Shown here: one piece after another, positions 15,801 to 61,818 of the stretch
How positions within the stretch are numbered: the stretch's first letter is position 1
Layout: each line of letters begins with the position of its first letter
Assembly (NCBI GenBank): GCA_964187785.1
Contig: OZ076421.1
Span: 34,410,001 to 34,474,000 of the forward strand
Length of the DNA: 64,000 bases
Origin: Amphiscolops sp. MND2022
Lineage: Eukaryota
Reading direction: 5' to 3'
The notes under the pieces: model-generated
Told to the model about the DNA's origin: nothing
The model's database searches: none
The model's input: only the letters and a program-made list of their open reading frames with translations
Made by a program: the position numbers and the translations under genes

Positions 15801-15804
15801 ACCA

Positions 15805-16374
15805 CTATTGTTTGGAACAGCCTACACACAGACGCTCAAGTTTGGAGTCAACTTTTGATTGGTTTGCATTGCGCCTACTCTCTAACCACTGATAAGCAAC
15901 AGCAGTTTTCAATTTGCTGCAATGCCAGAAATGTTGTTGTTGACTATTCCATGGGAGAAAGTTTGCGTGGTTCCCACAAGAAACCACAGCATTAACACAT
16001 AAATGTTTAATTGGGGGACAACCAAGCCTTTGCAAAATGTAAACTTTTTGATAATAGTTGGAGATAAATGCTCTCTTCACATGTCCGTCGACAAAAACAA
16101 TTGCGTTGGGAAAACGAAGTCGTAAACTGGCCAAATAATTATGGATAGAAGTGTAAGGGTAAACGCCACTGTCCCAGTCAATACCGTGTATTCTTTTTGT
16201 TAAGAATATTATCGAGTCGCGGTTAATAGTTGAAATTGTAGAAAAGGCTTGAGGAGGTTTGAAAAGTAGGGTTTCTTGATAATTTTTACTGTGAACGCTC
16301 AGCTCTTTAACGATAAGACCGTTGTAGTCAAACCCTTCAAAATCAATAACAAGAATTTCGTTCTCATTCAACAT
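15805..16374 (-). CDS. DEDD/DnaQ-fold exonuclease-like protein
   Basis: ILVIDFEGF (ExoI DxE), IVKELSV, HGIDWDSG, terminal HCS motif. Confidence 0.65.
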   Translation of the reverse strand: MLNENEILVIDFEGFDYNGLIVKELSVHSKNYQETLLFKPPQAFSTISTINRDSIIFLTKRIHGIDWDSGVYPYTSIHNYLASLRLRFPNAIVFVDGHVKRAFISNYYQKVYILQRLGCPPIKHLCVNAVVSCGNHANFLPWNSQQQHFWHCSKLKTAVAYQWLESRRNANQSKVDSKLERLCVGCSKQ

Positions 16375-16784
16375 TCCAATTCACGGAACCAGTGGGCTTG
16401 TGCTGAATATTTGAGTTTCAAAATGCTCCAGAGAGGGCGAACTGAGCATGACCAAAACTTTTGCAATCTGGTTCTTCTATCCAAGCAGTCACACACGTCA
16501 CTAAACGCCCCCATAAGCTCTTGCGAGTCGCGAACAATCACAAATAATCTGTACACTTTGCAATACTTGTAGAAAATTTCACATTTGATTTCTGGTTCTT
16601 CTTTCAGCAAATATTTCAAATGGTCCAAAGTAATGTTGTTGAAGTTGCAATTTTTTAGATATACCAAACAAAAACTTAGCACATACTTTTGATAAGTTTC
16701 GAATTTGTCCGAATTGTCTAATGAAAGTCTATGAAAAGTTTGCTGCACTTTTACAACGTCTATTTTTTGGGGGTCCATTTCCAA
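16368..16784 (-). CDS. Polinton hypothetical protein (138 aa, helical, several Cys)
   Basis: First ORF inside the right TIR; its stop overlaps the next start. Confidence 0.65.
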   Translation of the reverse strand: MEMDPQKIDVVKVQQTFHRLSLDNSDKFETYQKYVLSFCLVYLKNCNFNNITLDHLKYLLKEEPEIKCEIFYKYCKVYRLFVIVRDSQELMGAFSDVCDCLDRRTRLQKFWSCSVRPLWSILKLKYSAQAHWFRELEC

Positions 16785-17026
16785 TTTTGATTCTCAGCAT
16801 TCCTTCCTGCTGCTGATATTTCCTTTATAATGAATTTTTATCAAAACACGTTCGTAACATCAGACGAATAATGCATTCGAACAAAACTGTACATAAATTT
16901 CACACCCTCTCGTACCCTATTAAACTTTAGTGTGAATTATACGACAAACTAGATTACTTTTTATTGGCCGATTGATCGCTTGGCACAACAATACTACAAC
17001 CCGATTTGACTTTTATTACCACCGAT

Positions 17027-18327: not shown

Positions 18328-18490
18328 TTAGTACGAGTCGACGCACACTTGAGAAGTGGTCGCCAGCTTGGGCAGACTCTCAATGTCGACTTCCTGGCTT
18401 CCCTTCCGGTTTCCATGCTTTCCACTCATGCGCTTTTTGTTCAGGTTGGGAACGTGGATGTACACTTTGCCTTGGGAAGTGGCCGATTTT
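18328..18490 (-). CDS. CLCA-like gene, last exon (cytoplasmic tail, stop)
   Basis: tttcag acceptor, phase 2, matches the previous donor; RKSATSQGK...CVDSY*. Confidence 0.75.
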
Positions 18491-33400: not shown

Positions 33401-36400
33401 ATCGGCGGCCGACGTGAACAACACTATCTCGTGGATAGTTATGGCTCCTCCCATTCCAACAGTGTTCTTGAAAAAAATATAATACAAAATAAAACGATGG
33501 TATCCCGACTTCAAAATGGGTCAATTTACAAAGTTAATTAAAGAAGAAAACGACTTATATTTAACGACGCGTATATATGTGATGAAGTTTGAATGATGAA
33601 AACACTTTTGGACGATCACTGAGAATCAATCAAGATAGTTAAACCGTGAAAAAAAAACTAAGAACAGTAGATACAAGAAGAGGGCCAATTTTGCGGCTAA
33701 AAGAAGGCAATTTCACGAGGGATCCACAGAAGTCAAACTCGTGCTGCAGAAAATGAATTGATATTTATCATCTGTTTTTACGGTCGCAATAAGGGCGGAT
33801 TATAAGTCCAGCTACACAACCTCATGGCCCTAATGAAGTCATACCATCTGGGGTGATCTGACACCCCTCAACAAAACCGGTAGAGTCAACTGGTTCCTTG
33901 AGACTCCCCCTAGGTCTCCTTGGCACAACCATGACCAGATAAATTCTCTTCACTTCTAACTTATTTATCGTTCATTTCAAAACATTACTGTCGTGCTAGG
34001 AAATTTTGTCAAATTCATAGACTAGCCAAAATTACATAGATAGCCGAAAAAATTATTCGTCTACTGAAATAGTTGTTTCAAGATACTTTTTATAGAAATA
34101 TTAAAGATGATTTGCAGATGATTTCAAAAAAGTGTTTGCTAACACTCGCGAGGTAAGAAGTTCTAGAACTTCCATGTTGAGAGAAAAAGTGTGACTCGCA
34201 AAGATCTAACAATAACATTCAAGATCTTACAGAAAATCCTCAAAGAAACTTGCTTTTAATGGCTTCCTTTCAAAATCCTTACCAATAATGTACTTCTTGC
34301 AGAGATCTTGGAAGAATCTTGGAAAACAATTTTTGACGAGAATTAAAAAGAAAATGTCCATTTGAAAAATCTTGAAATGAAAGCCTCAGAATTTGAGGGA
34401 CCTTACATAGCAAGACCTGGCAAGATCTCGGCAATTATTGCATGTTCTTTAAACCCGGGTTCATACGACGCTCTCTTATACTGGTGTTTATAATTAATTT
34501 TTAAAATTGACTGATCATAATTGCCTTGGTCAAAGACAGAAGCATTGGCCTGGTCGCTCATTTCCAGCAGCTGGGGGTAGAGGAAGTGTTGGGTGTAGAC
34601 AACGGCCAGCCTCACATTGTGGGAGACCACCGTTTTGATGAAGTCAGACACGTACGGACCCTTGGTCTCCGCGTTACTCACCACAAGCACGAAGTTACTG
34701 TTGGGCGAGGTCGTTCCCCCCGGCCCATATGTCTATGCGCGACAAGTTTAGGAAGTGAAAAAAAAACAAATATCAATCAAGGTCTTTTATGATAACATGT
34801 GATGAAAATTCTCTTATGAGCCTTCTTATGAAAAACATGTTTTCATTGAAGAATTAAAACATGTTTTCCTGGGTTTTGTGTTCAAAAATGCCCCCTCAGA
34901 AAACTAGAGGCGGTTCCACACTGAGAAAGATTGGTTTCATTGTATCAGCGCAATTAAAGACAGTCAATTTCTTGGGAAATTTGTGGTATATGAATTGAAA
35001 TAGCACCATAATAATAGCTCCATAATGGAGTTGGAGAAAACACCAGTACTTTTGCGATCAAGAATCTTGATAATAACGTATTAATTATGATTAGATTCAG
35101 ATTAAGCAGCTGATTAACTTCGATAAATGACCTTTGAGAACAAAATACTTCGAAAATGACAACATAATTTTCAAATTCTTGACATATAGCTTGTATAGTT
35201 TATACTCATAAACGTAGATTTCATATGAACTATTTATAATATTAATAGGTAAAAGTTTGAAGTAGGTTAAAATAGGAAAGACAAAGCTTATTCAAGCTGA
35301 AGCCACAAGACGTTTACCTCCTATTGGCAAGCAGATGCGACTAAGGTCAATATTTCAAAAAGATTTCATGTACGTAGACAAATGAGTTAATTTCATTGCA
35401 AATTTGGATGCAGTAACTTTGACATGAGTCTAGTTTTTTTTACAGTTGATTATGTTGTAGAAAGCTAACAAAGTTTTCAATGGCAAGTAGATTTTTTCGA
35501 AACTATCGATAGCTCTTTTTAAAAAATAACTCGAAAAACATTGTCTTTACTTCCAAAATCCATTCTCAGAAACTACTCATAATTAATTGTGTTCGTCCTT
35601 CTACACGCAGATTCGCTTTGTATTGGATGCTTCAAATGCCAATTGGTCGTATTTATACATCAATGGTACATTTAAACCTATTTGTCAGCATTCTACAAAC
35701 TGCATTATATAAAAAGATGACGTTAAAAATATTTTTCAAAGTAGAGTCAACAGACCTCAAGATTCTAGCTGAAATGAACAGAATTAGAAGATTAATTAGT
35801 CTCCTATTAAGCAACACAGATCGTCTTCAACACAAATTCAATGCCAGACTTACAAATTCATTGTCGGTTTCACTTCCAGAACAACCCAGGCTTTTGTAGC
35901 TGGTCAAAAGACCCCGCAAAGATTCCTGGTTCACAGTAGATGCATCAACTTTCAGACTTTGTCTCAGACCTTCAATTGCTTTATTCAAAGTCACACACGT
36001 CGATTCGACATTCATTGCGCCCTAAATTGCAACAAAAAACTCTGATCAAACTTCAGAAACTTTTATAAAGCTTCTACACGTTTCAGAGTACAAAAAGCTA
36101 TAAACTACTTTATTAAACCGATAGAATTTTGAACGAACTTAGGTGAACCTAGATTTCCAACCATCGATCAAGAGCCAAAGAAGCTTCTGGTTTTACAAGC
36201 ATTTACTTTCAACCTCTGCCCATTTTTGAATGAATTTCAGTTCCATTCAAGCATATTGGAAAAGGTTGAAAACGTAAATGCGAAATCGTTTCAAACTTAC
36301 TATCAACTATAAACTAACTAATTCTTTAATCAAGTGAATTTGTCAAGCAGAATTTATGTTTCAGACGATCTGTTATCATGAGTTAAAATATAATCACCTA

Positions 36401-39400
36401 CGTGAATTTATTACATATAATTCATATTACATTTAAAAAATAGGGGACGCCACAAAATGGCCGATTATTAGGCGTAACAAAATGGACGATTTTCGAAGCG
36501 TAAGAAAAGGACCTGAACAGCTTCGGAGACACACCTATAGTGTCCCACGCGTAGGACATTACTTGACTAGCAGCTGGTTTAGACGAAGGCCGACATGGAA
36601 GGAAAAAGGCCGAGTCATACAGCCAATCAAAAAATTCAAAACACTTTAAAAATCGGCCACTTTTGTTATGTTGAAAATCGGCCATTTTGTCGTGCATCCA
36701 TAATATATTATAACTAGAGCTAGCTGAAGCTGATTAAGATATATGATGACAACTCAAAGTACCAATCAAATTAGTTCAGCAAAACCATTTCGGTTATTAA
36801 CCAATTATTACTTCCCCAGTCTACTAACCCAATCAAGGTTGGTAATAGTGGCACCGCCGTCGGCCACACATTTTTTGTACTGGGTCTCCAATTGGCTGAT
36901 CACTTCCGAGGATGAGTCACCACTTTGCCTCATCATCTTGATCGTGTCCATGATCGACTCACAGCTAGCCAATCCAGTCGAAGCTCCCTGCAACCAAAGT
37001 TTCGACACCTTCCTTTTCCCCACAAAAAAAACATCGGAAAAAGCTCGTTTTTGTGTTTTTTTGCAAAAGCTAGGACATGCCTCCTCAAATGTAATGCAAG
37101 ATGTGCTGGGAAAATGCAGTAGTTTACAAGGAGGACACATAAGCCAAAGTTCAGGAGGAGTATTTGAGTAAACTCTTTGTGGGGTAAAGGAAGTTTGTTT
37201 GGCCTCGCTCATTGCGACCCAAGAAGTCGGTTTGGCTCGAGGGGTGAATAGGATCCATGGAACTCAGGAACTCGTACAGTGACTATATTATGATAATATT
37301 ATTTTCCCCTACGTTATCAGTTGTCATCATACACTTTGTAAAATTTTAGTAATGATCGATCAGTCTTAGAGCCTGGACCAGTTATTGGGTTAATTAATTC
37401 TTGATCGATTTTTTAAAAAATTAACCAAAAAGTAGTTGACAGTTAGAGCCGAGTCCAGTTGATGAACGGATGGTCTCTACAATGGTCTAAAAATCAAAAG
37501 GAAAACTACTACACTTGGTTCAGAAAAAAAATAGAAATATCGCTCATGTTTTTGGTCATTTGAAAATTCACGAAAGCTATATTTTTAAATCAAAATTCTG
37601 TTTAACGATTCATCGCAACAACTCGTTCAAATTCATGTTTTTGTGAACGAAGGTGAAGCTTGTTAACCTGTTATTTTAAACGATCAATCGATTAGACTAA
37701 AATTTCAAGTGGCCCAGGCTCTCTAATCAGTCTTAATCACTTTTGAGAACATATGCTTCAGCTAGCTCAAGAATACCGCATAGCATTCCTTTTGAGGAAG
37801 TTTTCCGATACTTACAGCGCCAGAGTCGAATCCGCCCGATTCCAAGCATTTCTTGTAGTTCAACTTGACTCTCTCAATCACGACAGGGTCTGGGTTTGTT
37901 TCAACTTGAAGCGATTTGAGAACAGTAGCAAAATGATCACAAGTGGCAGATCCGCCGCTTCCTTCTCCCTGGAATACCATGCAGTAAGGATACAGTGGTA
38001 CAATTAAATCACCCAAAAATGAAAGGACATCAACCAATGAAACATCAGGAAAGAAGACGGGATTCGAATCTGATTGGCTAATGAATTTCAGAGTAATTTA
38101 ATCACACCACTGTACATCTACTTGAGCTAGCTGATGACCCATGATCGATGGTGGAAAAAACAATAGAAGCTTCTAACAAACAAATTATTTAGTCCTATTT
38201 TATCCCAAATGAACGGAATTTTTGGGGCTTATGAGAAGCCTAATGTCTCACTTAATAGAGTTTAACTTCTTAGGACTGTTGCATGATATTGCCAACTCAG
38301 GTGTAACATCAAGAACGAAAGATGTAAAAACCAAATGTTTTGATATACCTGTCTTCCTTTTTTTAAAATTCAAAAGTCGCCGCAATTTTTCATGAAACAA
38401 CCTGCGGCTTATACTCGATTGCGGCTAACAATAAACAAACACCTTGAGCAAGTAATAATGTCACTTACGCCTTCGTTTTCATCGATGTCTGCCAGACATT
38501 GAGGGTTCTTTTGCATGAGGAGGGCACGCACGGACTGGTCAGAAGACGAAAGGAAAAGTTTGCGAATATCGTCACAAGACAATATTTCAGAGGAGCCGCT
38601 GCCACCCTAAGCAAACGAGAACCCGTCAAAATGTGTATTTGTGACCTATATATTGCAACGATAGGTGGATTGAAAATAAAAATGAGCACCCCTCGACGAC
38701 AGAAGTCGGCTCCCTTAAGCGGTTCAAAAAGCGGAAGGAATCGCTCTTGAAAGTTTTCACCATACTAAAGATGAACTTCTTAACTGAAAGTCGGGAAATG
38801 GGAAATTTTCGGAGAAATGTCGAACAGTGCCGAAAAACACCTCCCAATGGGGACATTCTTAGCGTAAAATGAAGTTGCGAAATTCGCCAAAATTTCAACC
38901 CAAATGCGAGCATAGATAACCCAAGACTTCTGACGCAAAAACAAGTTTCAACACCTCTGTTCATTGATTTCTAAATGCAATAACGGTAAATATTGAAGAC
39001 AAGGATCATTGCGATAAAACTCCTAATTGACAATACCATGCAACAAGTTCTTAAACCAAGCCAAACTCTCAAGGTTAGAAGACACTTTTGCCAAACTAAT
39101 GATAAAAGCTACAGGAAATAAAAGCGATGATCTCAAACTAACGGAGCTCTGCGCCCGACATTGGTCGAGACTTTGTCGACTAAGATCGATCATGTCTTTG
39201 TTACCGGAAGCTTTCGCGTTCTCGTAAATTTGCTCCCACTGATCACAGTTAACGTCACTTCCACCGATCAAATCTCCAGGTCCCTGAACAAAAAATGTGC
39301 GAAAGTTTTGAGAAAATATGCTAATATATTGCGACAAATTAGTGCAGTAAATGTATGCAACCAACAACGATAAATAACTTCAATTTTATTGAGGCCGAAT

Positions 39401-42400
39401 TCGCTTTATTTTGAAATCTCGCAGAAGACACTGAGAGCAGTGATCGGTGGAAGTCACAAGATAGCGACACTTGGTTTAAGGTATTTCAACAAACCCAATT
39501 AGGTTAAATTTCCCCAACACTATCGAAAGAACATTTCAATTGGCCCCGTCACAGCCAAGAAACAACGATCAACTTACAAATTACGCCACGCTGCATTAAA
39601 ACTTTTGTGGTCATTTATTGGCGTTTATGAATCAGATCTTTCAAATTTTGTGTGACTCAGCTTGAAGATGTTCTTTCGACTTCAGGGGAAAAGTTAGTCG
39701 ACAACCCTACCTGTTGATTAGCGAGACAAGTGAAATAGGCGTCTCTAGCCAACTGTTTTTGTTTCTCCGACAAAGAGTTATCTTTCATGGCCGTGTTGTA
39801 AGCCTGTTCTGCACTGGTACAAGAAACCCCCTCCGATTGGCCACCGTCTACACCCGAACCACCCTAAACAGCCACGATAGTACCGTGTTACCCAATTGGT
39901 TAATCACTTTGTTTGGGTCCATCAAAAATTTCGCCGATGAAGGGTCTGGTTTGTTCGGCAGCTAATTTTATTCATTCAACAACTCGTGCAACAAGGTTTT
40001 ATAATTTTAAAGAATCATCGAATAAACCAACCCTTGGTTGAAACAAAATATCAAAACATTTTCAACACGATAAAAAATGTCCCTGTTTTATAGGCTCGGT
40101 TTATTACTTCTCAAAGTTTTTCAAAAATTGAAAGTTCCAGGTCGACAGCAAAATGTGGGACCTAAACCCAACCTATTAGTTAAGTCAATAAGCCTACAGG
40201 TAAGTAGAGCAATCCTGAGATTGAATGTCACTTCCTAATGGGAGGTTCGGAAGGGGTTCACTCGTACCACAGAACAAGCTGTACAAATTTAATCAACAAG
40301 CATGAAAAGTTAATGAAGCATTTTTGCCTAGATAAGGTGATTGTGAGTCAAACTTCAGGGAAGAATGATGAAAACCAAACCTTATTAGTTAAAGTGTTAG
40401 TTAGTTTTTAATTCGTTAGTTAAGTAACAAGAGCTGAACGTCTCAAGTCCTAATTAGGGCACTGCGTGGACTAGTATGTTGAAAAAAATCATTCTGATAC
40501 ATTCTGTGGTCTGACGAAAAAAAGCTAGTCATTGCAATAGTCGACCAAATTTTCTTACAAAATAAGCCGACTAAAAACAACACGGAAAAGTTAATCAAAA
40601 GTTGCCAACTAGACAAAAGCTTTCACACTTCATTCTCAATTGACTCAGCCTACAATTGCTACAGCAAAAATGCTTCTAAGAGGACAAAAGCGACTGGTTT
40701 CCAGAAATTCGGAAAGTTGTTTTCCGATTCCTAAATCAGATAAGCATCAATCTCGATGAAAATATAAAATCTCTATAACCGGAATATCAACCAAAACTTT
40801 ATTAGTAATCCACATCAAATAGAAAAAAAACTAATTGGAGAAGATTTAGAACGAACCGAGCTCGGGTCTTGGTTTTGGCAAGCTTCGAGGTCATTTCTCA
40901 ACAATCGGATCAAATTAGAAGCCAAGCCATTAGCTATGCCCTCTCTCAAAGCCTCCAATTCCTTGTCACAGCCTTCACCTGACCCTCCAACTGACACCTA
41001 CGCAACAAACACCCAAAATATCTTCCATTGGGCAGAATTCCACCAATTAGAAGCCGTCATTCACATTCAAAGGGGTTGACTTTGACTATGCAAACTCTAA
41101 ATGACATTGACCACTAGTTAATTCATATTCTTTGTATCAATCGAAGCGGCTTATAGCCGGGCGAATTATGTTTTCATAAAGTCATGAGAAAATTTTTATG
41201 CGAACAGATTTTAAGCATAATTGAGCTAATTTTTGATGATTTTGATCTAACTCAGACAGCAGTTCTTGAGAAGAGTCAGTGGTATGCTGCTATAGATAGA
41301 CGTCTATTTAGAACGGTGTTAAGTCGAGAATGAGCTATTCAGTGGAGTTCGAAATAGACTAGGTCGAAAAATTTAGAATCCATATGCAAATTGGGATACC
41401 TCAGATTTGAGAACTTTCCATTTTTGCTCTACTCGATTCAAACAATTTGAAATTTTCAATGGGCTCTCATTACCGACGAATTGAGGAATTGGTAATCGGA
41501 TCTCCGCATAAGTTGTAACCTCTTTCAAAGTTGGAAAATCAATAGTATTGGGTAAATATCATGGAAACGTGGCTCTGAACTCAAGGGATCAGACAATACA
41601 AGCGGATGAATCTAAACAGGAACTGCAAAATGTAACAGCGAAACACTTCCAACTATGTGTGAGCTTGAAGATAAAACTATCGACGGAAACCAGGAAAAGC
41701 AAAATAAAGACATGGAACAGAGTCAAAATCTCAATCCTCGCATACTCTAACTCAAACTCAACTTGACTTGATCTAATTACAAGTTGTTAAATGATACAGC
41801 TATCCCAAAACCCCAGGAAGAGTACAAAAAGCACACAAATTGATCAGTATCACAGACCACAGAAGGGAGACAATCATGAAAAAGAGCAAAAAGGACGCAC
41901 CGATCCTTCAGACGATTCTTGAACACACTTCTCGAGCGATGATTTCAACATCTGGATGACGTTGGCAGAGTATCCCAGTTGGATTCCTTCCTGGTAAGCC
42001 TGTCTTTCTTGTGCACAAGAAATGCCGTCTCCTCCTATTACAGAGGGATCCACCTGGGAACAACAACAAACACCACTTACAACAAATACAACTTTCTCCA
42101 CATTTTCCACACTTCGTGGAAAACGTTCGGATCGTTTGAATCTCCGGGGAAAAACGACAAATGAGGAGCTGAGATGGCATTAAGTTTTTAGCATTGGGTC
42201 GGAAACCACGTCAAAATTAAGCACGAAAACCAACCAAAAGCTAATCAAAAATTGAAACGTTAATCACTGCTCATCAGTTAGGTTAAACATCACGACGCCA
42301 GTTCATTATTGAGACAAAAGAGAATCGTATTCAGAGACCTCAAAACCTCGCCAACTTTAACAAAATAATGAAAAGGCCGAGGACAAGTTAGCGGTATATC

Positions 42401-45400
42401 GGAAACCAATCGAAACCCTCCAAGACACAAGAACACAAACCTATACAACAAAAGTCATCAAAACTTCCACCAAGCCTCATCTTGATTTATGCAATCACCT
42501 CGAAACGAAAACCTCAAAAAACTACTCAGAAAATTGCTCGAAAGATACACTCATTTGCTTATCTTGAGGAGACAGTGAAGAGCATCGACAATAAAGAAAC
42601 AACATCCAATTAGTAAGAGAATTTTGAAATCAAAGCATGCCGAAAACAAAACGCCTTCGACACAAAACTACCTGCTGATCATTCTGACACTGAAGCAACG
42701 CCTTTCTGAGGACGTCCAAAATCTCCTGGTTGAATCCACTGCGTATTCCATCTTCCAAAGCTCTCTGCTCTTTATCGCAGCCACTGATATCAACAGCAGA
42801 TGACCCACTCCCAGATTCCTGAAGAAAACTTGTTGGATTGAATATTGAAACTCCGTTGTATGTTTGGGCTGATAACACGTCGGTTTTTCGTGATTATTAT
42901 AAACAGGAACCAAGCGGCAAAGGAACAGTCGATAGTAACGGGAAATTTCAAAGTTAGAATGAATAAAAAGTGCGAATCATTGAAACTAACAATTTGTTTA
43001 AGTCGACTAGAGTTATGTTTCCTGATTTAATGAGAATGAAGTTTAATAAAGTTCAATAAAGATTTGTTGTCCAAGATGAACCGCGTAGAAAAACTCAATT
43101 TGCCTAAAAAGTATTTCTAAGTAGCGAATGTAACTGACTCAAAACAAACGATATCAAGTGACGACATGGGAAACTAGAACGAGAAAAGAATCGATCCCAT
43201 AACATCACATTAACTAATAATCTATGATGCAAGGACAAAACTCGAAAATAGTTTTGACAAAAATTGGGAAAATTTTAATTTTGAGAACCGTAACAACCAT
43301 CATCATCATCTCACATGATCCTTGCTAAAAAAGCTCACCTTGAAAAATTTTCAGGGGAAAAGTAATCATTGCAATAACCTTACAAACGTTTCCTTGCTAA
43401 ATCTAAGGAAATTAACCCCTGGCAAAATCTTGCAACTGCATTTTTTAAGAAAAACATTGTTTACAAGATCTAGCAAGGGATCTATTAGACATGGATATTG
43501 CACGATTCTTCCAAAGAGTTAAAGGAAAATGCATTAACTTGTAAGATCTTGAAAGATTCTCGCAAGATCCGTGCAAGGAAGCTGCTTTTTAATAACCAGG
43601 AAGGCCAAAACTTGATCGAATCCTGCAAACATTTGAAGAAATGATCCTTTCAGAGTGAAAAGTTCAATCAGCGACTCGACACACTAAATATAAGAGAGCT
43701 GCAATACGCAAACCAGAGAAGAAATAGGTACAACCGCACCTTTTAGAACGCTTAAGCTACCACCATTGTTGAGAATTTCAGCAAGTTACTGCTTGAGTGT
43801 CAAAATGCTAACTGCAAGCATCAGGTTGGTCCCCTCCATTACAATCTCGATTCAGAAGCACAAACTGGCCTATGTGAAACTGGACGTTGAAAAGCAGCTA
43901 AATGAACGAAAACAGACCAGATCGCTGACAGACTAATGAGATCAATGCCAAACAGGAAACCATTTTTATCCATTTCATTATCCCCCAATGAACATAGAGA
44001 TCGTAGCGAATTTTCAAAAAATATGGAAAACTGTTTTCAACCGTTAACATTGCCACAACTACGCATATCAGTGGACACATAAATGAACTATAAGAGTTTG
44101 AAAGGTGCAATCACAGGCTTTAATTTTGCTTCTGTGAGCCCATATCGCCATGCCCCTTTCTTAACAATTACCGTTTCTTTTTCCGGTACCGCTGCTCCTC
44201 GGCCATTCCGCACTTCCTTCGTCCAACCCGCTACGTCAGTGCTTGTAACAACAGCATATGTGATTTTGTTGCACGAGACCTTGCTGTGTAGGGGTATAGG
44301 TTGCCGTTTTATATACTTCACGGAGTTTTGAGAAAATTGGCTCTCATCAATAAGATAGTACTGGAAGAAACTAAATATTTTTTTCAAGAAAAACAGAATT
44401 TCTTAACGACGGAGAATTTCTAACCCTTCTGCTGTTGTTCAAAAAAGGTACAAAAAATACAAAATATAAACTGTGATATTGTGGGGATGCCAAAAAAAGT
44501 TTTAGAGGACAGCCATTGAATTTCATTAGCAACTTAGTAAACGCATTTTTTAAAATTTCTGATTCATTCATTGTTATGGCCATATATGTTCAACATTCTG
44601 ATGCTACGTTAAATATTCATGTCAAATGTTCCATTTTTCAAAACTGCTAATAGAAAACGTACTGACTAGCTGCACTATTGCAGTGAATAGTTTTACCTTC
44701 AGACCCCAGAGCTCATATCGTATGGTCAACGTTTCACAGAATTTACGCCTACGATCTAAAACATACCCAGAGAAGCTAAAGGGTCCTCCCTTTCGGCGCA
44801 CACTTTCCGATGATCTACGAAACTACATTACAAGGATATTTTCGGAACTGTGCAATTTTTGATAAGTTTTCAATCAAAGGGTCACCCTTTAGTTTATTTG
44901 ACATTTTCGGTTGCCAAGAAGCCCTTTTGAGCCCATTCTTTAGAACTGTGAGATTTCGCCATGAAAACTTTTTTGAAATTCAGAGAGATTCACCAGCATG
45001 AATGTTAGGAACAAGAGCATTCTTTACAAGGTCTACAGTTCTGCAAATACTCGGGAAATTTCACAAAATTCTCAATTTTCCGGACAGTAACCTTTTCTTT
45101 GAAGCTGTCAAGTTTTAAAGTCTCGAGACATTATCATTTTAGCGGCTCGTTCTTGACACGAATCACAATCAATTTCAAGTGACGTAAAGAACAATCCATC
45201 AAACTAACAAAAACCTCACTCTCAAACTTGCATATTCAAGTTAGTAATGCGATCAATTAATTCACAACCCCAAATCAATTCCAAGGACAGCATGCTACGA
45301 ATAAAGGCAACGGACTGCAATAAACTACCTGCTGATCCGACTGGCATTGGAGCAACGCCTTTCTGAGCACATCCAAAATTCCCTGGCTGAGACCATTGCG

Positions 45401-48400: not shown

Positions 48401-51400
48401 GTTTGGTGCCGAAAGAATCATTTTGCACAATGATTGAGAAAACTCTCATCAGTCCCACAGGACTAAAAAATAATCAGAGGTTACCCTTAAGGAGTCCTCT
48501 ATGTTCGCAAAACGTTTCTTGTAAAAATTGAGGGGGAGTTTTGATTTTAAAAAATTAGAGAATAGTCGCATAGAAAAAGCGCTGGTCTTAAAGTAAAATT
48601 CGGATACAGGATACCGCGTGCTGTGCCACTGAGAAAACCTACTTTTCAAAGTTAAGTTAAGCCGAAAAACATTTTTGAAAAATCTCACAAGGCCAAAAAT
48701 TCCAAAAGGGGACCCTTTGGTCTTTTTGAGAATCCAATTTGTTGCAAAATATGAAAACAAATTGAAGGGAGACCCTTTGAAGACTTCAAAAAATTCCGAA
48801 AAAATCTTACAAAGCCGAAAAATTGACGGGGAAACCTTTAGTCTCGTCCGTTTTTGCAAAAGCACAAAAAGTTGCTGGATGAAGCTGGGACTCGAACCGG
48901 CGACTCGATGGGGAACGTTGCTATTCGCGAATACTCTCAATAGTTACATCACTTAAAGCTCATTGTCGAACGGAGCTACCAATCACAATTTAGAATTCAA
49001 TTGGTTTCTACATTATTATCGAGCAGCTATACTTCCCATCACCAATATCACAAACTATAAAAGTTCACACCGCCTTTGATTCTTCGCGGGCTGAAGAAAA
49101 TACTACTACTAAGTTCGCATTCGCATGACGTCGTTTCGCATTGGTATTTGAGTACAAGCGAAGCTCTCGGAGTACGAATAAATAACTCTCGTTCATTTCA
49201 TCTCAATGAACTCGGCGAGCGAATATTTAGAATTCGTTTGCTTCATCTGATTAACCCGGAATGAAGGTGTAATTTTCTGGATGCATCCAAAAATCTGGTG
49301 CTTAAACTTTAAACCGCAATATCTCCAAAACTATTCGAATCCGACAAACGATTTATACAGCGTCCAAAAGAGGAGCATCAGGCCTTTCTAATCAATTTTT
49401 AAACTGCTGGGATTCGCCGCGCTGGCTCCGGACTTTGCGCCAAAACTTTGCACGCGTGGCGTCTCTTGCTGCAGTTCAGCTTGTTTCAAAACATGCTAGG
49501 GTCCCTTTGACTTAATCTTGTCCCCAGTATTATAAAGTGGCCACACAGGAAAACAGGGAAATTGGAAATTTTACGCTAATTTTTTTTTGATTTTTTGGTC
49601 CCGTTTTTTTATTTCGGAGAGATCAAGTCAACAATCCGTGAAAACGCGTGCAATTCTATGTTGTTTTGTCTGAAAATCTTATTCAAGAGTTTTCTTTACC
49701 ATACGGTGGGCTGGTGCCTTTAGAAGTCAGCAGATCTTAAGTGGTGCAAATACGTACCGCAATAATAATAGGTTAAAAGCACTGCCTCGCTGCTACCTTA
49801 ATGAAATAAACTAGCCAAAGACTTGAAGTAGCACTGCCTCAATTGCAGAATTGGGTCGATAATAAGTCAGGAAAAATATTTACGGCTTCTATAACATTTC
49901 AGCTCATGCTAAAATATTGAAAACAATGAAAGCGACAAGAGCCAACATATTGTGCATTCCCTCAATTCAACCATCCCGGAATCTCGAATTGCATCTTTTG
50001 AATCAGTTCTATTACGTTAGCACTGTTGTTTTACAATAATAAAGGTGTGGATTTTACGAAGAGTTCTCTCACGGAAAACTAGCGCGAATAGTTTCAGAAA
50101 AAAAACACTGCAGAATTCACTTTCGATTCCGACGACGCAAGCTTCCTCAATCATCCAAGTGAAACGACAAACCAAGTCAAAATTAGTCAAGTCTAACTGA
50201 AAAAAAACCTTACTTCTTTGCACTTAGAGTCGTAGCTTTCTTGAAGCATTCGCTCAAGAAAGTCATCTCCCATTTGATTGGCCGCCGAAATTCTCGCTTG
50301 CAACCCTTCACATTCGGATTCTGAGCTTGATCTCCGCTGACGATCTTTCTGTGAGTTTTCATAACAATTTTATTAGATATTAAATCATGCCAAAATTAAT
50401 AGGAAAAACAAAACAATTCAGCAACTGACCTAAACTATCTCTCCGGTGGTCGCCCAATGAAATTGAATGTTACTGATTAAGTTTCGACAACTGGCTAATA
50501 ACGATCAGTGGAACAGGATTTGATGATGAATCAATGTCCTTCACGGTGACTCCTTCGCCAACTTTGAAAAGTCCCCACGTAAAATTTAATGCATCAAGAG
50601 AACGAAAAGTAGTTATTGCCGTGAAACAAAAATTTCGGTGGACTTTGGAAAGCAAACGAATCTACTTCATTAAGGACACGAGTGTATACGGGCCCATGAG
50701 ACTAAAAACTAGAGGCAGAACGTCTTTACACACGACCGAGGGAAAAATTTTCTTAACAATTGGTCACTTGCCAAAGACAGCAACTGCTATCCACAGGTTT
50801 GTTAGCTCAAAATGAGATTGTTCCAAAAACTTTTACCTTTTCAAAACTTTCTTCATTCTCATAACTTCTATTTCTATTTGCACGACAATTAAGTCTCGTG
50901 AATTCAAGACGAGAGGCAATAGAATAGTGTTACAGAAGATCCGAACATCGTTCAAAAAATTTCACTATGCTTGGTAATTAGCAAATATTAGGCAGGTAAA
51001 AATCTGCAAGACCAAAAAATCTAAAGGCAGAAGCGATTGTGGTACGGTAGAAATCATATCTAAGAACTTCGTGAAAAAAGGTACACTTGATTCAATCTAT
51101 ATATCACTAACTTCATTCACACTTCCTTTGCAAGGAAATGGGGAAACTAAAGAGAAAAACGATACTGGACATCATTGGACATTATATAGAAGTGCCATTT
51201 CCAGCTTCTTTCAATAGGATTGCAGGATTTTGCGAAAATGAAACAAAATGTCAAAAATAGGATTCACCTGAGACAGTCTAAAATTCAATTGAGATGAAAG
51301 AGACAAATCACATGCAATCTTTGGAGTTTCACGACAAAATTATAACAAAAACGATTTTTATGGATGCTTCTTGAAGGCAACATCAGCTGTATCACACTCT

Positions 51401-54400
51401 CTTCACCAAATCTTTTCTAAAATACAACAAACTGCTACTTTCCCGGAAAGCTGGAAAATGGGTGTTGTAACACCAGTCTGGACCAGTCTCGAAGAAGGGC
51501 GACAAAATCGCAGTAGAAGACCACAGACAAATATCACTGCTACCAATTGCATCAAAAGCCTTTGAGAGATTCATTTTTATAGATTTATACAAACACTGCT
51601 CGACCATATTGAACAATCCCCAATATGAATTCCGTAGAAGACACTCAGCTGCACTACAATTACTTGTTTACAAGGAACATCTTTACAAATCTGTTAAACA
51701 GGGTACTGAATTTGAAGTGGTGTACATTGATTTTGAAAAAGCTTTTGACAAAGTTGACCCGGTGTCATTCTTCGCAAGTTGTGGCAAATCGGCGTTAGAG
51801 GCAAGCTGTGGATGACAATAAAATCGTATCTACAAAACCGAAGACAGGTTGTCAAAGTTGGCAATTCCTTTTCCAAAATAGTTGGGAAATATGAATAGTG
51901 GGGTTCCAGAAGGCTCACTGCTAGAGCCACTCTTGTTTCTGATACTAATCAATGACCTTCTCGATGTCTGCGTCTCCAGCGACTGCCTCGCGTGTGCAGA
52001 TGACGAGAAAAGTATGAGCCGTATGGACTCAGCACTGTTCCAAATCGATCTTTAAAAATTCAGTGAGTGGTGCCTAAGGAACGTTATGCCATTTAATGCC
52101 ATGAAATGCAAACTTCTGAGCTCTGCTAGCTCACCTAGCGCAATATCGATTTCCAACTTCCCGGTCAAGGCGGTCATCACTTATAAAGACCTAGGCTTGT
52201 GCATCAATACTAGCTTAACATGGGATGAGCACATACAATACAAATGTTCCCAAGCAATAAGTCTTTTTCATGATCAAACGAAACTCTGCAAATCTGTCAG
52301 TGATAGGCAAAGTAAACTTGTACAAAACGATGACTCTTCCTATTATAACATACGCGAGTCAATGCTGGTATGCTACAACGACTTCATTTATAAAGCTTTA
52401 TAAAGACGAGCTGTTAAATGGATAACGTTCGATAAAGATCACCGCAGTGGCCTTATCTCAACAAATCTCCTACCACTATCACTGTACTTACAGTTACTGG
52501 ACCTCATGATGCTTTCAAAAGTTATCAATGGTGGTTGTGACATTGACTACTCTAGTTTCGTCACTGTTATTAATAAGCCAAACAGCATTTACCCTACGCG
52601 CCTAGACTTGCGAACTCGGTTAGCTATCGAGAAACCACGAACGAGAAAAGAACAGTGCTTTTGGTACAGGGCACCAGCCACTGTAAATCGGATTGCAACT
52701 GCGGTAGACTTCTTCAACGCTGTTAACCTCGAAGCTAGAATTATCAAATACATGTGGCTTATTATATCGAAGGTGACTCCGACTCTTGGAGAGTATGACA
52801 ACTCAGAAGATGTCCCTTCACGGTCTTGCAATTACCTTTGTATACATTTCTAAGTCAAGTGCACGATGTTTCTGAACTGACTGAGAAATTGAACCAGAGA
52901 AGTAAACGAGATATGAAAATAAAAATTGGTCCTCGAAATTTGTGAAAATTCGACATTTTGAACCATCATTTCTCGAAATTGAAAACAAAATGCAAAAATC
53001 AGTTCCGTTCAAATATTCGAAGCATTTAAGGATTTTTATCTGCTCGTCTTCTGCATGTGATTTGTTGATTGAAAACCTGGAATGCTCAAAAATTTAGAAA
53101 ATTAATTAACTTGATTTGATTTTTGATTGAGCCTGAAAAAAGTGAAATTTTCGATGCAATAAATTGGCTGGATGATTTTTGCCTGCTCATAAAATGTGTA
53201 TTTTATGACGTAGTTTGTTGGTCTGTTTTTTCCAAAGTTTGCCGTAGTCCCTTTTCTCAAGTTTGTGACAACTTCGAAAAATGGCGACAAAAATTGCATA
53301 GATGTATGAATGGCAATTTTCAGATATAGATAACTTTCAATATACCCAATCAACAAATGATTATTTTTGAAAGTGTTCAAAAGGACGTTTGTAGACCCTT
53401 CCGGGCTGAAAGTAGTCACGGTATTGAGTGGGCACCTTGTTTACGGAGTTTTCTTGGAAGATTGAGCCGTTTTTTTTCTTGGAAATAGTTTCTAAAATGC
53501 AAATCAACTTGTTCATTTCTTTTTTGTTTTTTTTTCGTTCACTTCAACTGTGAATGCTTTTCACTTTGCTTTAGTTAGAATTAATCGCTGTGAAAATTTA
53601 ACTGTGATAATTTATCTTTAGTAAGAGTTTTAACACTGTGTTAAAAAAGAAATTTCCGTATCTAGCTTTTCCGTCAACGTTTTTTCAAGCCGCATGCTGA
53701 TCAATTTTAACCTCAATTCCTGTTTTCATTCGCGGCTGATGCAAATGCTCGATTTTTTGGTAGGTTTGCATATCTGGTTTTCCCCGAAAATTGAACTCAA
53801 CTCTCCGCTCCTTCAATTCAGGGTTTTGACCTCGCTAATTCTCTAAAAAGCATTTTCCCGAACGGTTAAATATTTGGTCTAAAGAATGTTAGATGATGAA
53901 ATGATTGTTTTTACAAGAGAAAATGTCGGAAATTTTATACTTTGTGGACTTTATGAAAGGAAAAATTGAGTTTTTCGACATGTATTTTGAAACTTTGTGT
54001 ATACTCTGAAGAAATTTTGGTATTTCACATGCTTAGTTGCCGCTAATTTGAATCGCTAATGAAATCGCTAAAAATTCCTATGTGGCCGCTAATTCGCTAA
54101 ACCGCTAACTAGTGGTGTCAAAACTCTGCTGCAAGTATGATAGTTGTATAACTGGTAATGTGTCGTCCTCAAGTATTTAAACCGCAGTATCTCCAAAACT
54201 ATTCGAATCCGACAAACGATTTATACAGCGTCCAAAAGAGGAGCATCAGGCCTTTCTAATCAATTTTTAAACTGCTGGGATTCGCCGCGCTGGCTCCGGA
54301 CTTTGCGCCAAAACTTTGCACGCGTGGCGTCTCTTGCTGCAGTTCAGCTTGTTTCAAAACATGCTAGGGTCCCTTTGACTTAATCTTGTCCCCAGTATTA

Positions 54401-57400
54401 TAAAGTGGCCACACAGGAAAACAGGGAAATTGGAAATTTTACGCTAATTTTTTTTTGATTTTTTGGTCCCGTTTTTTTATTTCGGAGAGATCAAGTCAAC
54501 AATCCGTGAAAACGCGTGCAATTCTATGTTGTTTTGTCTGAAAATCTTATTCAAGAGTTTTCTTTACCATACGGTGGGCTGGTGCCTTTAGAAGTCAGCA
54601 GATCTTAAGTGGTGCAAATACGTACCGCAATAATAATAGGTTAAAAGCACTGCCTCGCTGCTACCTTAATGAAATAAACTAGCCAAAGACTTGAAGTAGC
54701 ACTGCCTCAATTGCAGAATTGGGTCGATAATGTCAGAAAAAATATTTACGGCTTCTATAACATTTCAGCTCATGCTAAAATATTGAAAACAATGAAAGCG
54801 AGAAGAGCCAACATATTGTGCATTCCCTCAATTCAACCATCCCGGAATCTCGAATTGCATCTTTTGAATCAGTTCTATTACGTTAGCACTGTTGTTTTAC
54901 AATAATAAAGGTGTGGATTTTACGAAAAGAGTTCTCTCAAGGAAAACTAGCGCGAATAGTTTCAGAAAAAAAAACACTGCAGAATTCACTTTCGATTCCG
55001 ACGACGCAAGCTTCGTCAATCATCCAAGTGAAACGACAAACCAAGTCAAAATTAGTCAAGTCTAACTGAAAAAAACCTTACTTCTTTGCACTTGGAGTCG
55101 TAGCTTTCTTGAAGCATTCGCTCAAGAAAGTCATCTCCCATTTGATTGGCCGCCGAAATTCTCGCTTGCAACCCTTCACATTCGGATTCTGAGCTTGATC
55201 TCCGCTGACGATCTTTCTGTGAGTTTTCATAACAATTTTATTAGATATTAAATCATGCCAAAATTAATAGGAAAAACAAAACAATTCAGCAACTGACCTA
55301 AACTATCTCTCCGGTGGTCGCCCAATGAAATTGAATGTTACTGATTAAGTTTCGACAACTGGCTAATAACGATCAGTGGAACAGGATTTGATGATGAATC
55401 AATCAATGTCCTTCACGGTGACTCCTTCGCCAACTTTGAAAAGTCCCCACGTAAAATTTAATGCATCAAGAGAACGAAAAGTAGTTATTGCCGTGAAACA
55501 AAAATTTCCGCGGACTTTGGAAAGCAAACGAATCTACTTCATTAAGGACACGAGTGTTATACGGGCCCATGAGACTAAAAACTAGAGGCAGAACGTCTTT
55601 ACACACGACCGAGGGAAAAATTTTCTTAACAATTGGTCACTTGCCAAAGACAGCAACTGCTATCCACAGGTTTGTTAGCTCAAAATGAGATTGTTCCAAA
55701 AACTTTTACCTTTTCAAAACTTTCTTCATTCTCATAACTTCTATTTCTATTTGCACGACAATTAAGTCTCGTGAATTCAAGACGAGAGGCAATAGAATAG
55801 TGTTACAGAAGATCCGAACATCGTTCAAAAAATTTCACTATGCTTGGTAATTAGCAAATATTAGGCAGGTAAAAATCTGCAAGACCAAAAAATCTAAAGG
55901 CAGAAGCGATTGTGGTACGGTAGAAATCATATCTAAGAACTTCGTGAAAAAAGGTACACTTGATTCAATCTATATATCACTAACTTCATTCACACTTCCT
56001 TTGCAAGGAAATGGGGAAACTAAAGAGAAAAACGATACTGGACATCATTGGACATTATATAGAAGTGCCATTTCCAGCTTCTTTCAATAGGATTGCAGGA
56101 TTTTGCGAAAATGAAACAAAATGTCAAAAATAGGATTCACCTGAGACAGTCTAAAATTCAATTGAGATGAAAGAGACAAATCACATGCAATCTTTGGAGT
56201 TTCACGACAAAATTATAACAAAAACGATTTTTATGGATGCTTCTTGAAGGCAACATCAGCTGTATCACACTCTCTTCACCAAATCTTTTCTAAAATACAA
56301 CAAACTGCTACTTTCCCGGAAAGCTGGAAAATGGGTGTTGTAACACCAGTCTGGACCAGTCTCGAAGAAGGGCGACAAAATCGCAGTAGAAAACCACAGA
56401 CCAATATCACTGCTACCAATTGCATCAAAAGCCTTTGAGAGATTCATTTTTATAGATTTATACAAACACTGCTCGACCATATTGAACAATCCCCAATATG
56501 AATTCCGTAGAAGACACTCAGCTGCACTACAATTACTTGTTTACAAGGAACATCTTTACAAATCTGTTAAACAGGGTACTGAATTTGAAGTGGTGTACAT
56601 TGATTTTGAAAAAGCTTTTGACAAAGTTGACCCGGTGTCATTCTTCGCAAGTTGTGGCAAATCGGCGTTAGAGGCAAGCTGTGGATGACAATAAAATCGT
56701 ATCTACAAAACCGAAGACAGGTTGTCAAAGTTGGCAATTCCTTTTCCAAAATAGTTGGGAAATATGAATAGTGGGGTTCCAGAAGGCTCACTGCTAGAGC
56801 CACTCTTGTTTCTGATACTAATCAACGACCTTCCCGATGTCTGCGTCTCCAGCGACTGCCTCGCGTGTGCAGACGACGAGAAAAGTATGAGCCGTATGGA
56901 CTCAGCACTGTTCCAAATCGATCTTTAAAAATTCAGTGAGTGGTGCCTAAGGAACGTTATGCCATTTAATGCCATGAAATGCAAACTTCTGAGCTCTGCT
57001 AGCTCACCTAGCGCAAAATCGATTTCCAACTTCCCGGTCAAGGCGATCATCACTTATAAAGACCTAGGCTTGTGCATCAATACAAGCTTAACATGGGATG
57101 AGCACATACAATACAAATGTTCCAAAGCAATAAGTCTTTTTCATGATCAAACGAAACTCTGCAAATCTGTCAGTGATAGGCAAAGTAAACTTGTACAAAA
57201 CGATGACTCTTCCTATTATAACATACGCGAGTCAATGCTGGTATGCTACAACGACTTCATTGCGTACACTTGAAGCTTTATAAAGACGAGCTGTTAAATG
57301 GATAACGTTCGATAAAGATCACCGCAGGGGCCTTATCTCAACAAATCTCCTACCACTATCACTGTACTTACAGTTACTGGACCTCATGATGCTTTCAAAA

Positions 57401-60400
57401 ATTATCAATGGTGGTTGTGACATTGACTACTCTAGTTTCGTCACTGTTATTAATAAGCCAAACAGCATTTACCCTACGCGCCTAGACTTGCGAATTCGGT
57501 TCGCTATCGAGAAACCACGAACGAGAAAAGAACAGTGCTTTTGGTACAGGGCACCAGCCACTGTATATCGGATTGCAACTGCGGTAGACTTCTTCAACGC
57601 TGTTAACCTCGAAGCTAGAATTATCAAATACATGTGGCTTATTATATCGAAGGTGACTCCGACTCTTGGAGAGTATGACAACTCAGAAGATGTCCCTTCA
57701 CGGTCTTGCAATTACCTTTGTATACATTTCTAAGTCAAGTGCACGATGTTTCTGAACTGACTGAGAAATTGAACCAGAGAAGTAAACGAGATATGAAAAT
57801 AAAAATTGGTCCTCGAAATTTGTGAAAATTCGACATTATTTTGAACCATCATTTCTCGAAATTGAAAACAAAATGCAAAAATCAGTTCCGTTCAAATATT
57901 CGAAGCATTTAAGGATTTTTATTTCTCAAGAAAACCTTGGTTGACGGCCAGAATTGAAAAAAAAACGATTCTTTTTACAAAGTGAACTTTGGCATTTTGA
58001 TGTTGAAAAAAAAACATAAAACTGTACGATATCTAATACTCCTTCGGGAATTTTTTCCTAGGTCGCAAAATCACTGAATTCATCCATCAAAAAAGTCACA
58101 GCTTGATTTCTATGCTGTAAAGGCAGCGCACTTAAGAATAAGGAGACATTCAAACAACTACATCAAATATTGTAAATCAGACACTTTGAGTGTCAGATTC
58201 CAATGTTTATTGCACAATTTCAAAGTGAAAAAATCTTGCCTTCAATCGACCCCTATAGCAAACAAAATGTCACCAATAATAAAAAAGGCTAAATACGGAG
58301 AAACAATGGTCGTTAGTTGACTAGAACGGCACGAACTTTTTCGAAGAATTTTGGGAAAATTTATAACAAGTCATTCGATTTGATAGACTACCCCCAATTG
58401 ACAGACCTTAATATAATACGAATAAAAAACTGAACTTTTGATTCGGAAAATTTGCTGATAAAAACTGCTTGAAAATGAATGACTTTGAACATCAGCTTTT
58501 TTCCGAAGTTTAAAATTTTAAGGCAGCTTTTTGCGAAGTTTCACCTTTTGAAAAAAAACGACGTCCTATCTTCTTTAAAAACACCCACCGAATAGCGTCA
58601 TATACCTAAGAAGAGAACTTTTTCTTCGAGTACGCTTGATACCACGTTAAGGGTTGCATTCCAGAAAAAAACATCTGATTGCTTACTTCTTTGCATTTGG
58701 ATGCATAGTTCTCCTTCAACATGCCTACAAGGAAGTCATCGCCATTTCTTTCAGCTGCCGAAATTCTCTCTTCCAAAGTCCTGCATTGAGCTTCGTTCTC
58801 AGAACTCGATCGGCGAATTCGATAACTCATATACTGTAATTTGAAACTTGCCACTCTATTGAAAAGCAAAAAACCACAGCTGCAATCGAACTAAACTGAA
58901 GTGTCTCCCTAGTAGAGCCTGTTTTTGGACAATTCTACAAAGATTTCTTTTTAGAAATCGAAAGTTACTGAGAAGGCCAGAAACGATACCATATATACGT
59001 AAAACTGGAAAATGGAAGAAGTTTTAAAATGAGACCTTGACAAAAACTAAACCAATTAAAATCTACGGAGAAGAGACAAGCAGAAAGACGAAAATTCTAT
59101 TTTTGAACCAAGAAGTTCACCCCCTGGCATTGAGTAAGTTATGCGGTTCCCATCAAAGACTAAACTGCTGGGCTATACAACCAACTCAGGTGAGTGTCCG
59201 GATAATTCAGATCTTCGTTCAAGTCGTATGTATCTGAGACCCCATTTCGCGACGACTAAAGTTAAGACCACCCGGTTATTTCGTATTTCTCATTATTCGC
59301 AAAATTTTATTCAATCCCTAGCGATACGAATTAGGCGGATTCAACTATACTCAAGTACCAACTGGAAGTCTTTTATTAACTCGGCGTTTACTGTTAAGAC
59401 AAAATCGACAAATTAGAGATTTTAAAAAGACGGTTGCGACGAAAAGGATATGGCGGCCGATTTGTGATTCACATGACAATTGGACTAGTGGTTTGAGCGC
59501 AGGACTTGAGGCAGAACCATGGGGTTCAAATCTCACTACTGTTCGATTTTTTGCACCGGCTCAGAGCTGTTCTCAACTTGAAGAAACAACCCAATATCAA
59601 TAGAACAACTCAATTGAGGCTCAAAACGCAGTTTGAGAAACTTTTGAAGCCCATGAAATCTTAGTACTGACTGAAAACATCATAAAAATCCAAAACAAGG
59701 AAAACAAGCAACTGTTGCCCATATAGGGCGTTTTGTTCAAAAAAAGCTGTTTTTCGGGTATTTGCACGGAACAAACCGTGGCTTCTAATTTTAAATAGAC
59801 CGGAAACGACCCAAGTCGGCGCCTCGCTCAAGGCTCAAAAAGAGCAAACTGTTTTGAAAATGCGAAGGCACACCATTGTTTTTTAAAATCAAATTTACAG
59901 CGTCAAAAATACTCGAAGGGATACCCATAAGACTCGAAAAACCGCTTTTTTCTTAGCTCGAAAGTTTTCAAAAAGTTTTTTCTTCCGGAAAAAGTCGAAC
60001 CCTTTGTTATCCCTCTACTTTTGCAAGCATAAAAATCTTGGTTTAATACGGGACTCGAACCACGTGTTCCTGCTTCACTAGGCCCTGAAATCCATGTTTT
60101 ACCACTGGGCCAAGAGGCCGGGCCACTTCAGTAAATTCAATTTTAATTCAATATTCCATTCAAATTTTACAAAAGTGGACGTTTCACGGTGACTGAAGAA
60201 AAAAACGTGGTACTGTAAGAGGCTTGCACCGACTAAAACGCCGACTAAAGAAGATAACGAATACAGGACATTCCAGTCCATTAATACTTACCTCAACGCA
60301 CTTTTCTTGATAACTCTCTTGCAGCGTTTTCTCGAGAAATTCGTCGTTCAAACCCTTGACCAGTGCAATTTTCTGTTCAAGAGTCTGACACTCTTCAGAA

Positions 60401-61818: not shown

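Follow-up and report, generated by a model that had tools for sequence, protein, structure and literature searches.

The 64,000-nucleotide (nt) stretch analysed here, hereafter the window, comes from the acoel Amphiscolops sp. MND2022 (contig OZ076421.1, positions 34,410,001 to 34,474,000, forward strand). Its minus strand carries an array of small exons, each coding for a two-cysteine module, followed by the C-terminal exons of a gene of the CLCA family and, beyond the end of that gene, by a Maverick/Polinton-type element (Table 1). Comparison with two annotated proteins of other acoels shows what the array belongs to: the module exons are best explained as cassette exons of one large, acoel-specific, type-I membrane-anchored CLCA-family gene.

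Both strands of the window were scanned for open frames of 90-240 nt bounded by AG and GT, with a length that is a multiple of 3 and exactly two Cys 26-40 residues apart. In addition, a module profile built from 52 modules was searched against all six frames. Once alternative boundaries in the scan are settled, the two approaches agree on 17 module exons, which all lie in the interval 35854-61818 of the minus strand and reach per-domain E-values of 1.7e-7 to 1.9e-14 in the profile search; beyond these 17 modules, the profile found no match at E < 0.1 on either strand of the 64 kb. The original prediction had placed an array of 14 exons in this interval. The array is real, but its count has to be raised to 17. 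The proposed architecture extends to the complete set, as all 17 exons are 135-168 nt long, have lengths that are multiples of 3 and are phase 0-0, with pyrimidine-rich YAG acceptors and GT donors, and the equation of one exon with one module is borne out throughout. Spliced together, they encode 834 amino acids (aa) without a stop, a product that is Ser-rich (13%), also rich in Glu, Leu and Gly, and net acidic (141 Asp and Glu against 97 Lys and Arg). Its 34 Cys are distributed as two per exon in 17/17 exons, at an offset of 29-31 in 15 of them, 26 in one and 38 in the last. The spacing initially given, 28-30 intervening residues and 37 in a single exon, thus describes 15 exons and the last one, but not the exon with an offset of 26. 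By itself the AG/GT/two-Cys filter is unspecific and also picked up about 15 unrelated loci in the window. What sets the array beyond chance is therefore not the filter, but the mutual homology of the 17 modules and their match with proteins that are annotated in other species (E = 1e-60 and 1.4e-35).

Each exon encodes a unit of 45-56 residues that consists of a short linker rich in Gly, Ser, Asp and Glu, followed by an alpha-helical hairpin. The helical hairpin, at first proposed from the letters alone, is reproduced by AlphaFold2, which was run on the module of exon 9 with the 52-sequence module alignment. The model is a helix-turn-helix with helices at residues 15-27 and 31-48 and a turn at 28-30 (mean predicted local distance difference test [pLDDT] 79.4; 27 of 49 residues at or above 90), and its two Cys, residues 14 and 44, are in register, opposite each other across the antiparallel hairpin. 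A disulfide between them probably closes the open end of the hairpin, because both Cys recur without exception in all modules, no further Cys occurs in the array, and the array is extracellular as judged from its situation between the leader peptide and the transmembrane (TM) helix of the host protein described below. In a model of a 498-aa stretch of eleven modules, eleven hairpins are connected by linkers with pLDDT below 50 and the predicted TM-score (pTM) is 0.20, which suggests that the modules are arranged as beads on a string.

The modules had been reported to belong to no recognisable family and to differ from CX9C and saposin proteins, and the searches concur. Pfam holds no family matching single modules or whole-array segments, Foldseek returned only generic hairpins (E > 0.5) from the PDB and from AFDB clusters, and the best scores in language-model atlas searches, 0.62-0.66, lie below the useful level. 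Specific candidates were rejected. CHCH/twin CX9C proteins do not fit a module with only two Cys at an offset of 26-38 and no Pfam match; alpha-hairpinins have a CX3C-Xn-CX3C pattern where 17/17 modules have two Cys each; saposins are rejected as well; and the DC-EC repeat of CagY_M (PF07337) matched neither modules nor array segments, even at E up to 1-10. We conclude that the module is an undescribed small domain, encountered so far only in acoel flatworms.

When the 17-module profile was searched against 1.84 billion protein representatives, five matches only were returned, two RefSeq proteins and three short open reading frames (ORFs) from ENA assemblies. The RefSeq proteins, both named 'uncharacterized protein', are LOC142340535 of Convolutriloba macropyga (2,484 aa, 14 matched stretches, E = 1e-60) and LOC134854903 of Symsagittifera roscoffensis (2,322 aa, 11 matched stretches, E = 1.4e-35). 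Of the ENA ORFs, two fall within the sequence of the window itself (100% and 95% identity). The remaining one sits on a different contig, L001, and shows the same series of modules of one subtype (type B, see below) without nucleotide similarity to the window; it therefore represents a fourth, related genome.

Both RefSeq orthologues contain the CLCA N-terminal domain (PF08434) at residues ~27-306 (E = 5e-61 and 3e-63), after which Pfam detects only the first half of the von Willebrand factor A (VWA) domain, profile positions 1-93 of 174. Their layout comprises a signal peptide, the CLCA N-domain, the first VWA half, 26 two-Cys modules, the second VWA half, beta-rich and fibronectin type III (FnIII) parts, a TM helix and a conserved tail, the hydrophobic leader and the TM helix having been judged by eye. 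The corresponding C-terminal exons were located in the window by tblastn with the orthologues (P0001 and P0002), at 47-79% identity. This region aligns to columns 601-890 of a profile made from 22 ordinary CLCA proteins (hhalign probability 99.8%); of the two genera, Symsagittifera is the nearer to it (up to 79% identity) and Convolutriloba the more distant. The best-conserved part of the protein is the cytoplasmic tail, the C-terminal end of which is the same in both RefSeq orthologues; such conservation hints at a conserved intracellular partner. A long acidic low-complexity exon (23221-23760, minus strand), with a loose conservation of 32-37% identity in both orthologues, lies between the beta-rich and FnIII-like parts. 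Pfam gave no match for the downstream exon pieces of the window, and a sequence search of solved structures with the N- and C-terminal parts of the orthologues gave none either. By its alignment to the orthologues, the window contains the final 17 modules together with the C-terminal part of the protein, whereas the N-terminal part would be encoded past base 64000. The profile search, Pfam on the orthologues and tblastn together show that the array lies inside a CLCA-family gene and is no free-standing module system. We found no relevant literature linking CLCA proteins with acoels and no paper on the host gene.

The position of the array within this gene is informative. In a three-species alignment, the exon that comes first past the array looks like the later half of the VWA domain of CLCA proteins, beginning with strand beta4. 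The post-array stretch aligns to columns 415-480 of the CLCA profile (hhalign probability 88%, E = 2.8e-6), which start exactly where the first VWA half stops and cover the beta4 strand, the next helix and the beta5 strand. A second, shorter exon-like stretch with approximate borders resembles the same half-VWA segment, and the two may be duplicated or mutually exclusive exons. A second-half match past the array, together with a first half ahead of it, points to the array as an insert of ~1,150-1,400 residues in a loop of the VWA domain, a placement that is supported but not proven.

The motifs of the host protein have also degenerated. The catalytically required motif of CLCA proteins is HExxHxxxGxxDE (PMC11231702). 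Both orthologues read RExxHxxxGxxDE (residues ~155-170 of P0001 and P0002), with Arg in place of a first His that is at least 90% conserved in 22 CLCA homologues. The first motif of their MIDAS (metal ion-dependent adhesion site; residues ~335-345) is DxSxR, and none of the three species has the Asp that follows strand beta4, so that no intact MIDAS is left. Protease activity and metal-dependent binding through the VWA domain are both improbable for the host protein. As RExxH replaces HExxH in the orthologues, self-cleavage may be lost, and furin cleavage may have come in its place.

In their longest isoforms, both orthologues have 26 two-Cys modules in the same subtype order. The array opens there with about nine type-A/A' modules (Cys offset 29-34), which in Amphiscolops fall outside the window and which have no detectable homology to types B-F (hhalign probability 0.5%). 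These are followed by 5-7 type-B modules, 4-6 type-C modules and a tail series of distinct subtypes; the window comprises six type-B, five type-C and six tail modules. Six tail modules are also present in S. roscoffensis, where they are one-to-one orthologous to those of the window, and nine in C. macropyga, in which two subtypes are duplicated. The notion of an expanding module system survives in part, since copy number has changed in a lineage-specific manner in the type-B and type-C blocks, whereas the three acoel genera agree in subtype order and the six final modules are orthologous one to one. Judged from these alignments, the array is old and ordered rather than freely expanding, with copy number shifting only in the B and C blocks and by one triplication in C. 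macropyga. A comparison of rates among the exons, which the original prediction had called for, gave a proportion of non-synonymous differences (pN) of 0.10 and of synonymous differences (pS) of 0.74 for exon 2 and its orthologue on L001, and of 0.095 and 0.74 for the paralogous exons 8 and 9, which amounts to strong purifying selection on the exons. Between species the exons are similar and the introns are without similarity.

The annotation of the orthologues further suggests that the array is variable at the transcript level. At least 12 distinct isoforms (numbered up to X23; 2,100-2,520 aa) are listed for S. roscoffensis and at least 15 (numbered up to X44; 2,278-2,689 aa) for C. macropyga. 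The isoforms of S. roscoffensis are set apart from one another solely by contiguous array deletions of 142-420 aa, and those of C. macropyga solely by such deletions of 55-411 aa. All deletion ends, from which the exon borders of S. roscoffensis were deduced, lie 8-14 residues ahead of the first Cys of a module, where the exon borders of the window also fall; the structure of one exon per module is therefore common to the orthologues. Because all exons are phase 0-0, any subset of them can be skipped in frame.

A further property is confined to one block of the array. The six type-B exons of the window begin with a furin-type RxxR site, 8-12 residues ahead of the first Cys. If the 18 residues upstream of the first Cys are considered, RxxR accompanies every type-B module (6/6 in the window, 7/7 in S. 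roscoffensis and 5/5 in C. macropyga, hence 18/18) and none of the others (0/11, 0/19 and 0/21, respectively, hence 0/51). Basic sites are found in the same type-B series of contig L001. The retention of these sites while type-B modules diverged to ~40% identity or less is the best argument that each unit is cut out, and repeated units that are each flanked by convertase-type sites are what is expected of a polyprotein.

Altogether, we favour a reading of the locus, with a probability of roughly 60%, as encoding a splice-variable string of disulfide-stapled hairpins set in a split VWA domain and subject to furin cleavage in its type-B stretch. In-frame exon skipping would set the length of the ectodomain, which would most likely be flexible, acidic and organized as beads on a string. 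Cleavage in the secretory pathway would most likely take place at the RxxR sites of type-B modules, thereby generating an N-terminal fragment and a membrane-bound C-terminal fragment, and would free acidic hairpin peptides of ~40-45 aa. A bolder version holds that a CLCA pseudo-protease has been turned into a splice-programmable peptide factory, in which furin excises stapled hairpins that would constitute a new family of animal peptides and whose number and identity are set by exon skipping, the two halves of the protein staying joined via a re-formed VWA fold. Taken as a whole, we consider this version unlikely.

Several considerations weigh against the favoured interpretation. The split of the VWA domain depends on a single profile-profile alignment at 88%, and Pfam alone misses the second half. 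In MAFFT alignments of the shortest isoform segment with ordinary CLCA VWA domains, that second half landed at the beginning of the array; with the halves entered in rows of their own, it landed atop the first half. The CLCA N-terminal part lies outside the window, so that the status of array and C-terminal exons as a single gene leans on the orthologues. The tandem model was computed on an alignment of two sequences, which makes its absence of inter-module packing weak evidence. RefSeq isoforms are automatic models, and similar tandem exons can yield spurious exon-skipping alignments; the four read runs over the locus are DNA, with flat depth and no splice joints, and no RNA-seq run is listed for the species. 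Type-B peptides are acidic and, in Pfam and the language-model atlas search, unlike any known hormone, toxin or antimicrobial peptide. Finally, cleavage, the released peptides, the disulfides and function, as well as the reality of the isoforms in vivo, are steps that we infer.

Some of the same observations would suit a structural spacer or stalk, that is, a long flexible acidic tether or a gel-forming part of a CLCA-like protein at the cell surface or associated with mucus, in which RxxR cleavage only splits the protein into two associated fragments and the hairpins are inactive by-products. Linkers predicted to be disordered, no predicted packing between modules and the excess of Asp and Glu over Lys and Arg (141 against 97) all agree with a tether. 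Moreover, a furin site could replace the self-cleavage presumed lost with the RExxH motif of both orthologues, and sites occur on only 5-7 of the 26 modules. We hold this explanation to be possible, at odds well short of even. A single site would suffice for such a split, yet in three to four species all type-B modules have retained a site each, in the same position, despite identities of ~40% or less, which is the pattern expected if each unit must be released.

The furin sites of the array, together with its own subtype structure in the orthologues, could also be those of a separate gene, a secreted polyprotein located upstream of a CLCA-like gene and wrongly fused to it in the RefSeq models; no CLCA N-domain occurs within the window. 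Such a fusion error is very improbable given that, in two species annotated independently of each other, the array has one half of a single VWA domain on either side, that neither end of the array in the window shows a start, a signal-peptide exon or a terminal exon, and that 17/17 exons are internal and phase 0-0, the last module exon closing with a donor rather than a stop. Hardly any weight goes to the idea that the exons are non-functional, whether as a decaying array, a transposon-derived repeat or chance AG...GT frames. The selection of unrelated loci by the AG/GT/two-Cys filter, the abundance of transposons in the window and the location of two exons within a near-identical duplication would be compatible with it, but the conservation data contradict it: the 17 exons contain no stop and their joined frame is intact, non-synonymous change is low while synonymous sites are saturated, the module order is kept in proteins of two other genera and on the fourth contig, L001, and it is the exons, not the introns, that are similar between species.

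The duplication just mentioned is a tandem one with a period of ~4.87 kb (49308-53039 against 54176-57922, 98.8% identity) and holds exons 6 and 5, which are 99% identical in nucleotides and differ by zero non-synonymous changes. It could be either a recent duplication or an assembly artefact. The duplicated region (49308..57922), in introns of the array, also carries plus-strand ORF fragments whose motifs resemble those of a retroelement reverse transcriptase; Pfam found no match for these ORF fragments. Elsewhere in the introns, the interval 40420-40619 has a depth ~200-350 times that of its neighbours in all four DNA runs and is thus a very high-copy repeat. The Maverick/Polinton-type element occupies 1300-16800 on the minus strand, and adjoining it are three near-identical plus-strand ORFs (5888-6175, 6341-6673 and 6839-7171), which point to a tandem repeat of ~500 bp (5600-7200).

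Table 1. Features of the 64-kb window of Amphiscolops sp. MND2022, with module exons in transcript order (positions are those of the window).
Feature	Position	Strand	Remarks
Module exon 1, type B	61672..61818	-	147 nt; RRKR within the exon, ahead of the module
Module exon 2, type B	61129..61287	-	159 nt; RSRR; orthologous exon on contig L001
Module exon 3, type B	60292..60438	-	147 nt; RLRR
Module exon 4, type B	58687..58833	-	147 nt; RIRR
Module exon 5, type B	55082..55216	-	135 nt; RQRR
Module exon 6, type B	50214..50348	-	135 nt; RQRR; peptide identical to exon 5
Module exon 7, type C	46593..46730	-	138 nt
Module exon 8, type C	45329..45469	-	141 nt
Module exon 9, type C	42672..42818	-	147 nt; module used for folding
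Module exon 10, type C	41901..42053	-	153 nt
Module exon 11, type C	40857..40997	-	141 nt
Module exon 12, tail	39711..39863	-	153 nt; one-to-one orthologue of the S. roscoffensis P0006 module at residue 1495
Module exon 13, tail	39143..39283	-	141 nt; orthologue of the P0006 module at 1548
Module exon 14, tail	38469..38606	-	138 nt; Cys offset 26; orthologue of the P0006 module at 1595
Module exon 15, tail	37816..37968	-	153 nt; orthologue of the P0006 module at 1642
Module exon 16, tail	36829..36987	-	159 nt; orthologue of the P0006 module at 1692
Module exon 17, final module of the array	35854..36021	-	168 nt; Cys offset 38
First exon past the array	34478..34732	-	similar to the later half of the VWA domain of CLCA proteins (from strand beta4 on); three-species alignment
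Second, shorter exon-like stretch	33329..33460	-	like the same half-VWA segment; approximate borders
C-terminal exons of the host gene	18331..24369	-	beta-rich, FnIII-like, acidic stretch, TM helix, tail; tblastn of P0001/P0002, 47-79% identity
TM helix	within 18812-19051	-	tblastn of P0001/P0002
Cytoplasmic tail and stop	18331-18492	-	best-conserved part; 79% identity to S. roscoffensis
Polinton, 1,410-aa ORF	1315-5547	-	taken by eye for a protein-primed DNA polymerase; no Pfam match
Polinton, adenovirus-type protease	9420-9860	-	PF00770
Polinton, 468-aa capsid-like ORF	9864-11270	-	no Pfam match
Polinton, rve integrase	12388-13386	-	PF00665
Polinton, A32-type packaging ATPase	14120-14845	-	PF04665

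The splice-variable hairpin string that we favour touches no long-standing open question and is a curiosity rather than a breakthrough. Nevertheless, it brings to light a small undescribed extracellular domain, a putatively single-disulfide alpha-hairpin with one exon per module, which would have been amplified to 26 copies inside the VWA loop of a well-known family. If the furin sites are used, the host protein would match the plant alpha-hairpinin precursors on the animal side, and peptides would be made in an uncommon way, from the middle of a membrane protein. With its symmetric phase-0 exons and dozens of annotated isoforms, the gene also offers a compact model for length-variable ectodomains obtained via exon skipping.

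With the CLCA family, the acoel proteins share the N-domain (E = 3e-63) and the first VWA half, as seen in the orthologues, and a C-terminal part that in the window matches the family profile at 99.8%; a C-terminal membrane anchor is likewise found in CLCA2 and CLCA4. They differ in being ~2.5 times longer (2,100-2,689 aa against ~950 aa), in a VWA domain split by an insert of 26 modules, in a degenerate MIDAS and in the replacement of the first His of HExxH by Arg. Cleavage of the acoel protein, if any, would occur at furin-type sites in the insert and not by self-cleavage. Animal prohormone and polyprotein precursors resemble the array in that they are proteins of the secretory pathway with repeated units of similar length, each after RxxR or RxKR. 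The acoel units, in contrast, occupy the central part of a large membrane protein, sit within a folded domain and are helical hairpins of 40-45 aa instead of short amidated peptides, with no Gly-Lys-Arg amidation signal.

Plant alpha-hairpinins, which come from multimodular or vicilin-type precursors (PMC7191063), are comparable as small disulfide-stapled helix-loop-helix peptides present in several copies in a secretory precursor, beside an unrelated folded domain. Their copy number varies with lineage, and they are released by proteolysis, as we propose for the acoel modules. No sequence similarity exists between the two, and the parallel is one of analogy only. Alpha-hairpinins have four Cys (CX3C...CX3C) that form two disulfides, depend on vacuolar processing enzymes and are usually basic, whereas the acoel modules have two Cys with one putative disulfide, are acidic, carry furin-type sites and are encoded by one exon each.

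Finally, it was the DC-EC repeat of Helicobacter pylori CagY that came closest in the language-model feature search, scoring a weak 0.62. The middle repeat of this protein (PF07337) is also made of tandem alpha-helical modules with two Cys each and modelled intramodule disulfides, and in-frame variation in module number changes the protein (PMC10706595). In the bacterial protein, the Cys pair bridges adjacent helices at a 3-residue spacing, whereas in the acoel modules the two Cys would close a hairpin of 30 residues. CagY varies by DNA recombination, and its acoel analogue would vary by splicing.

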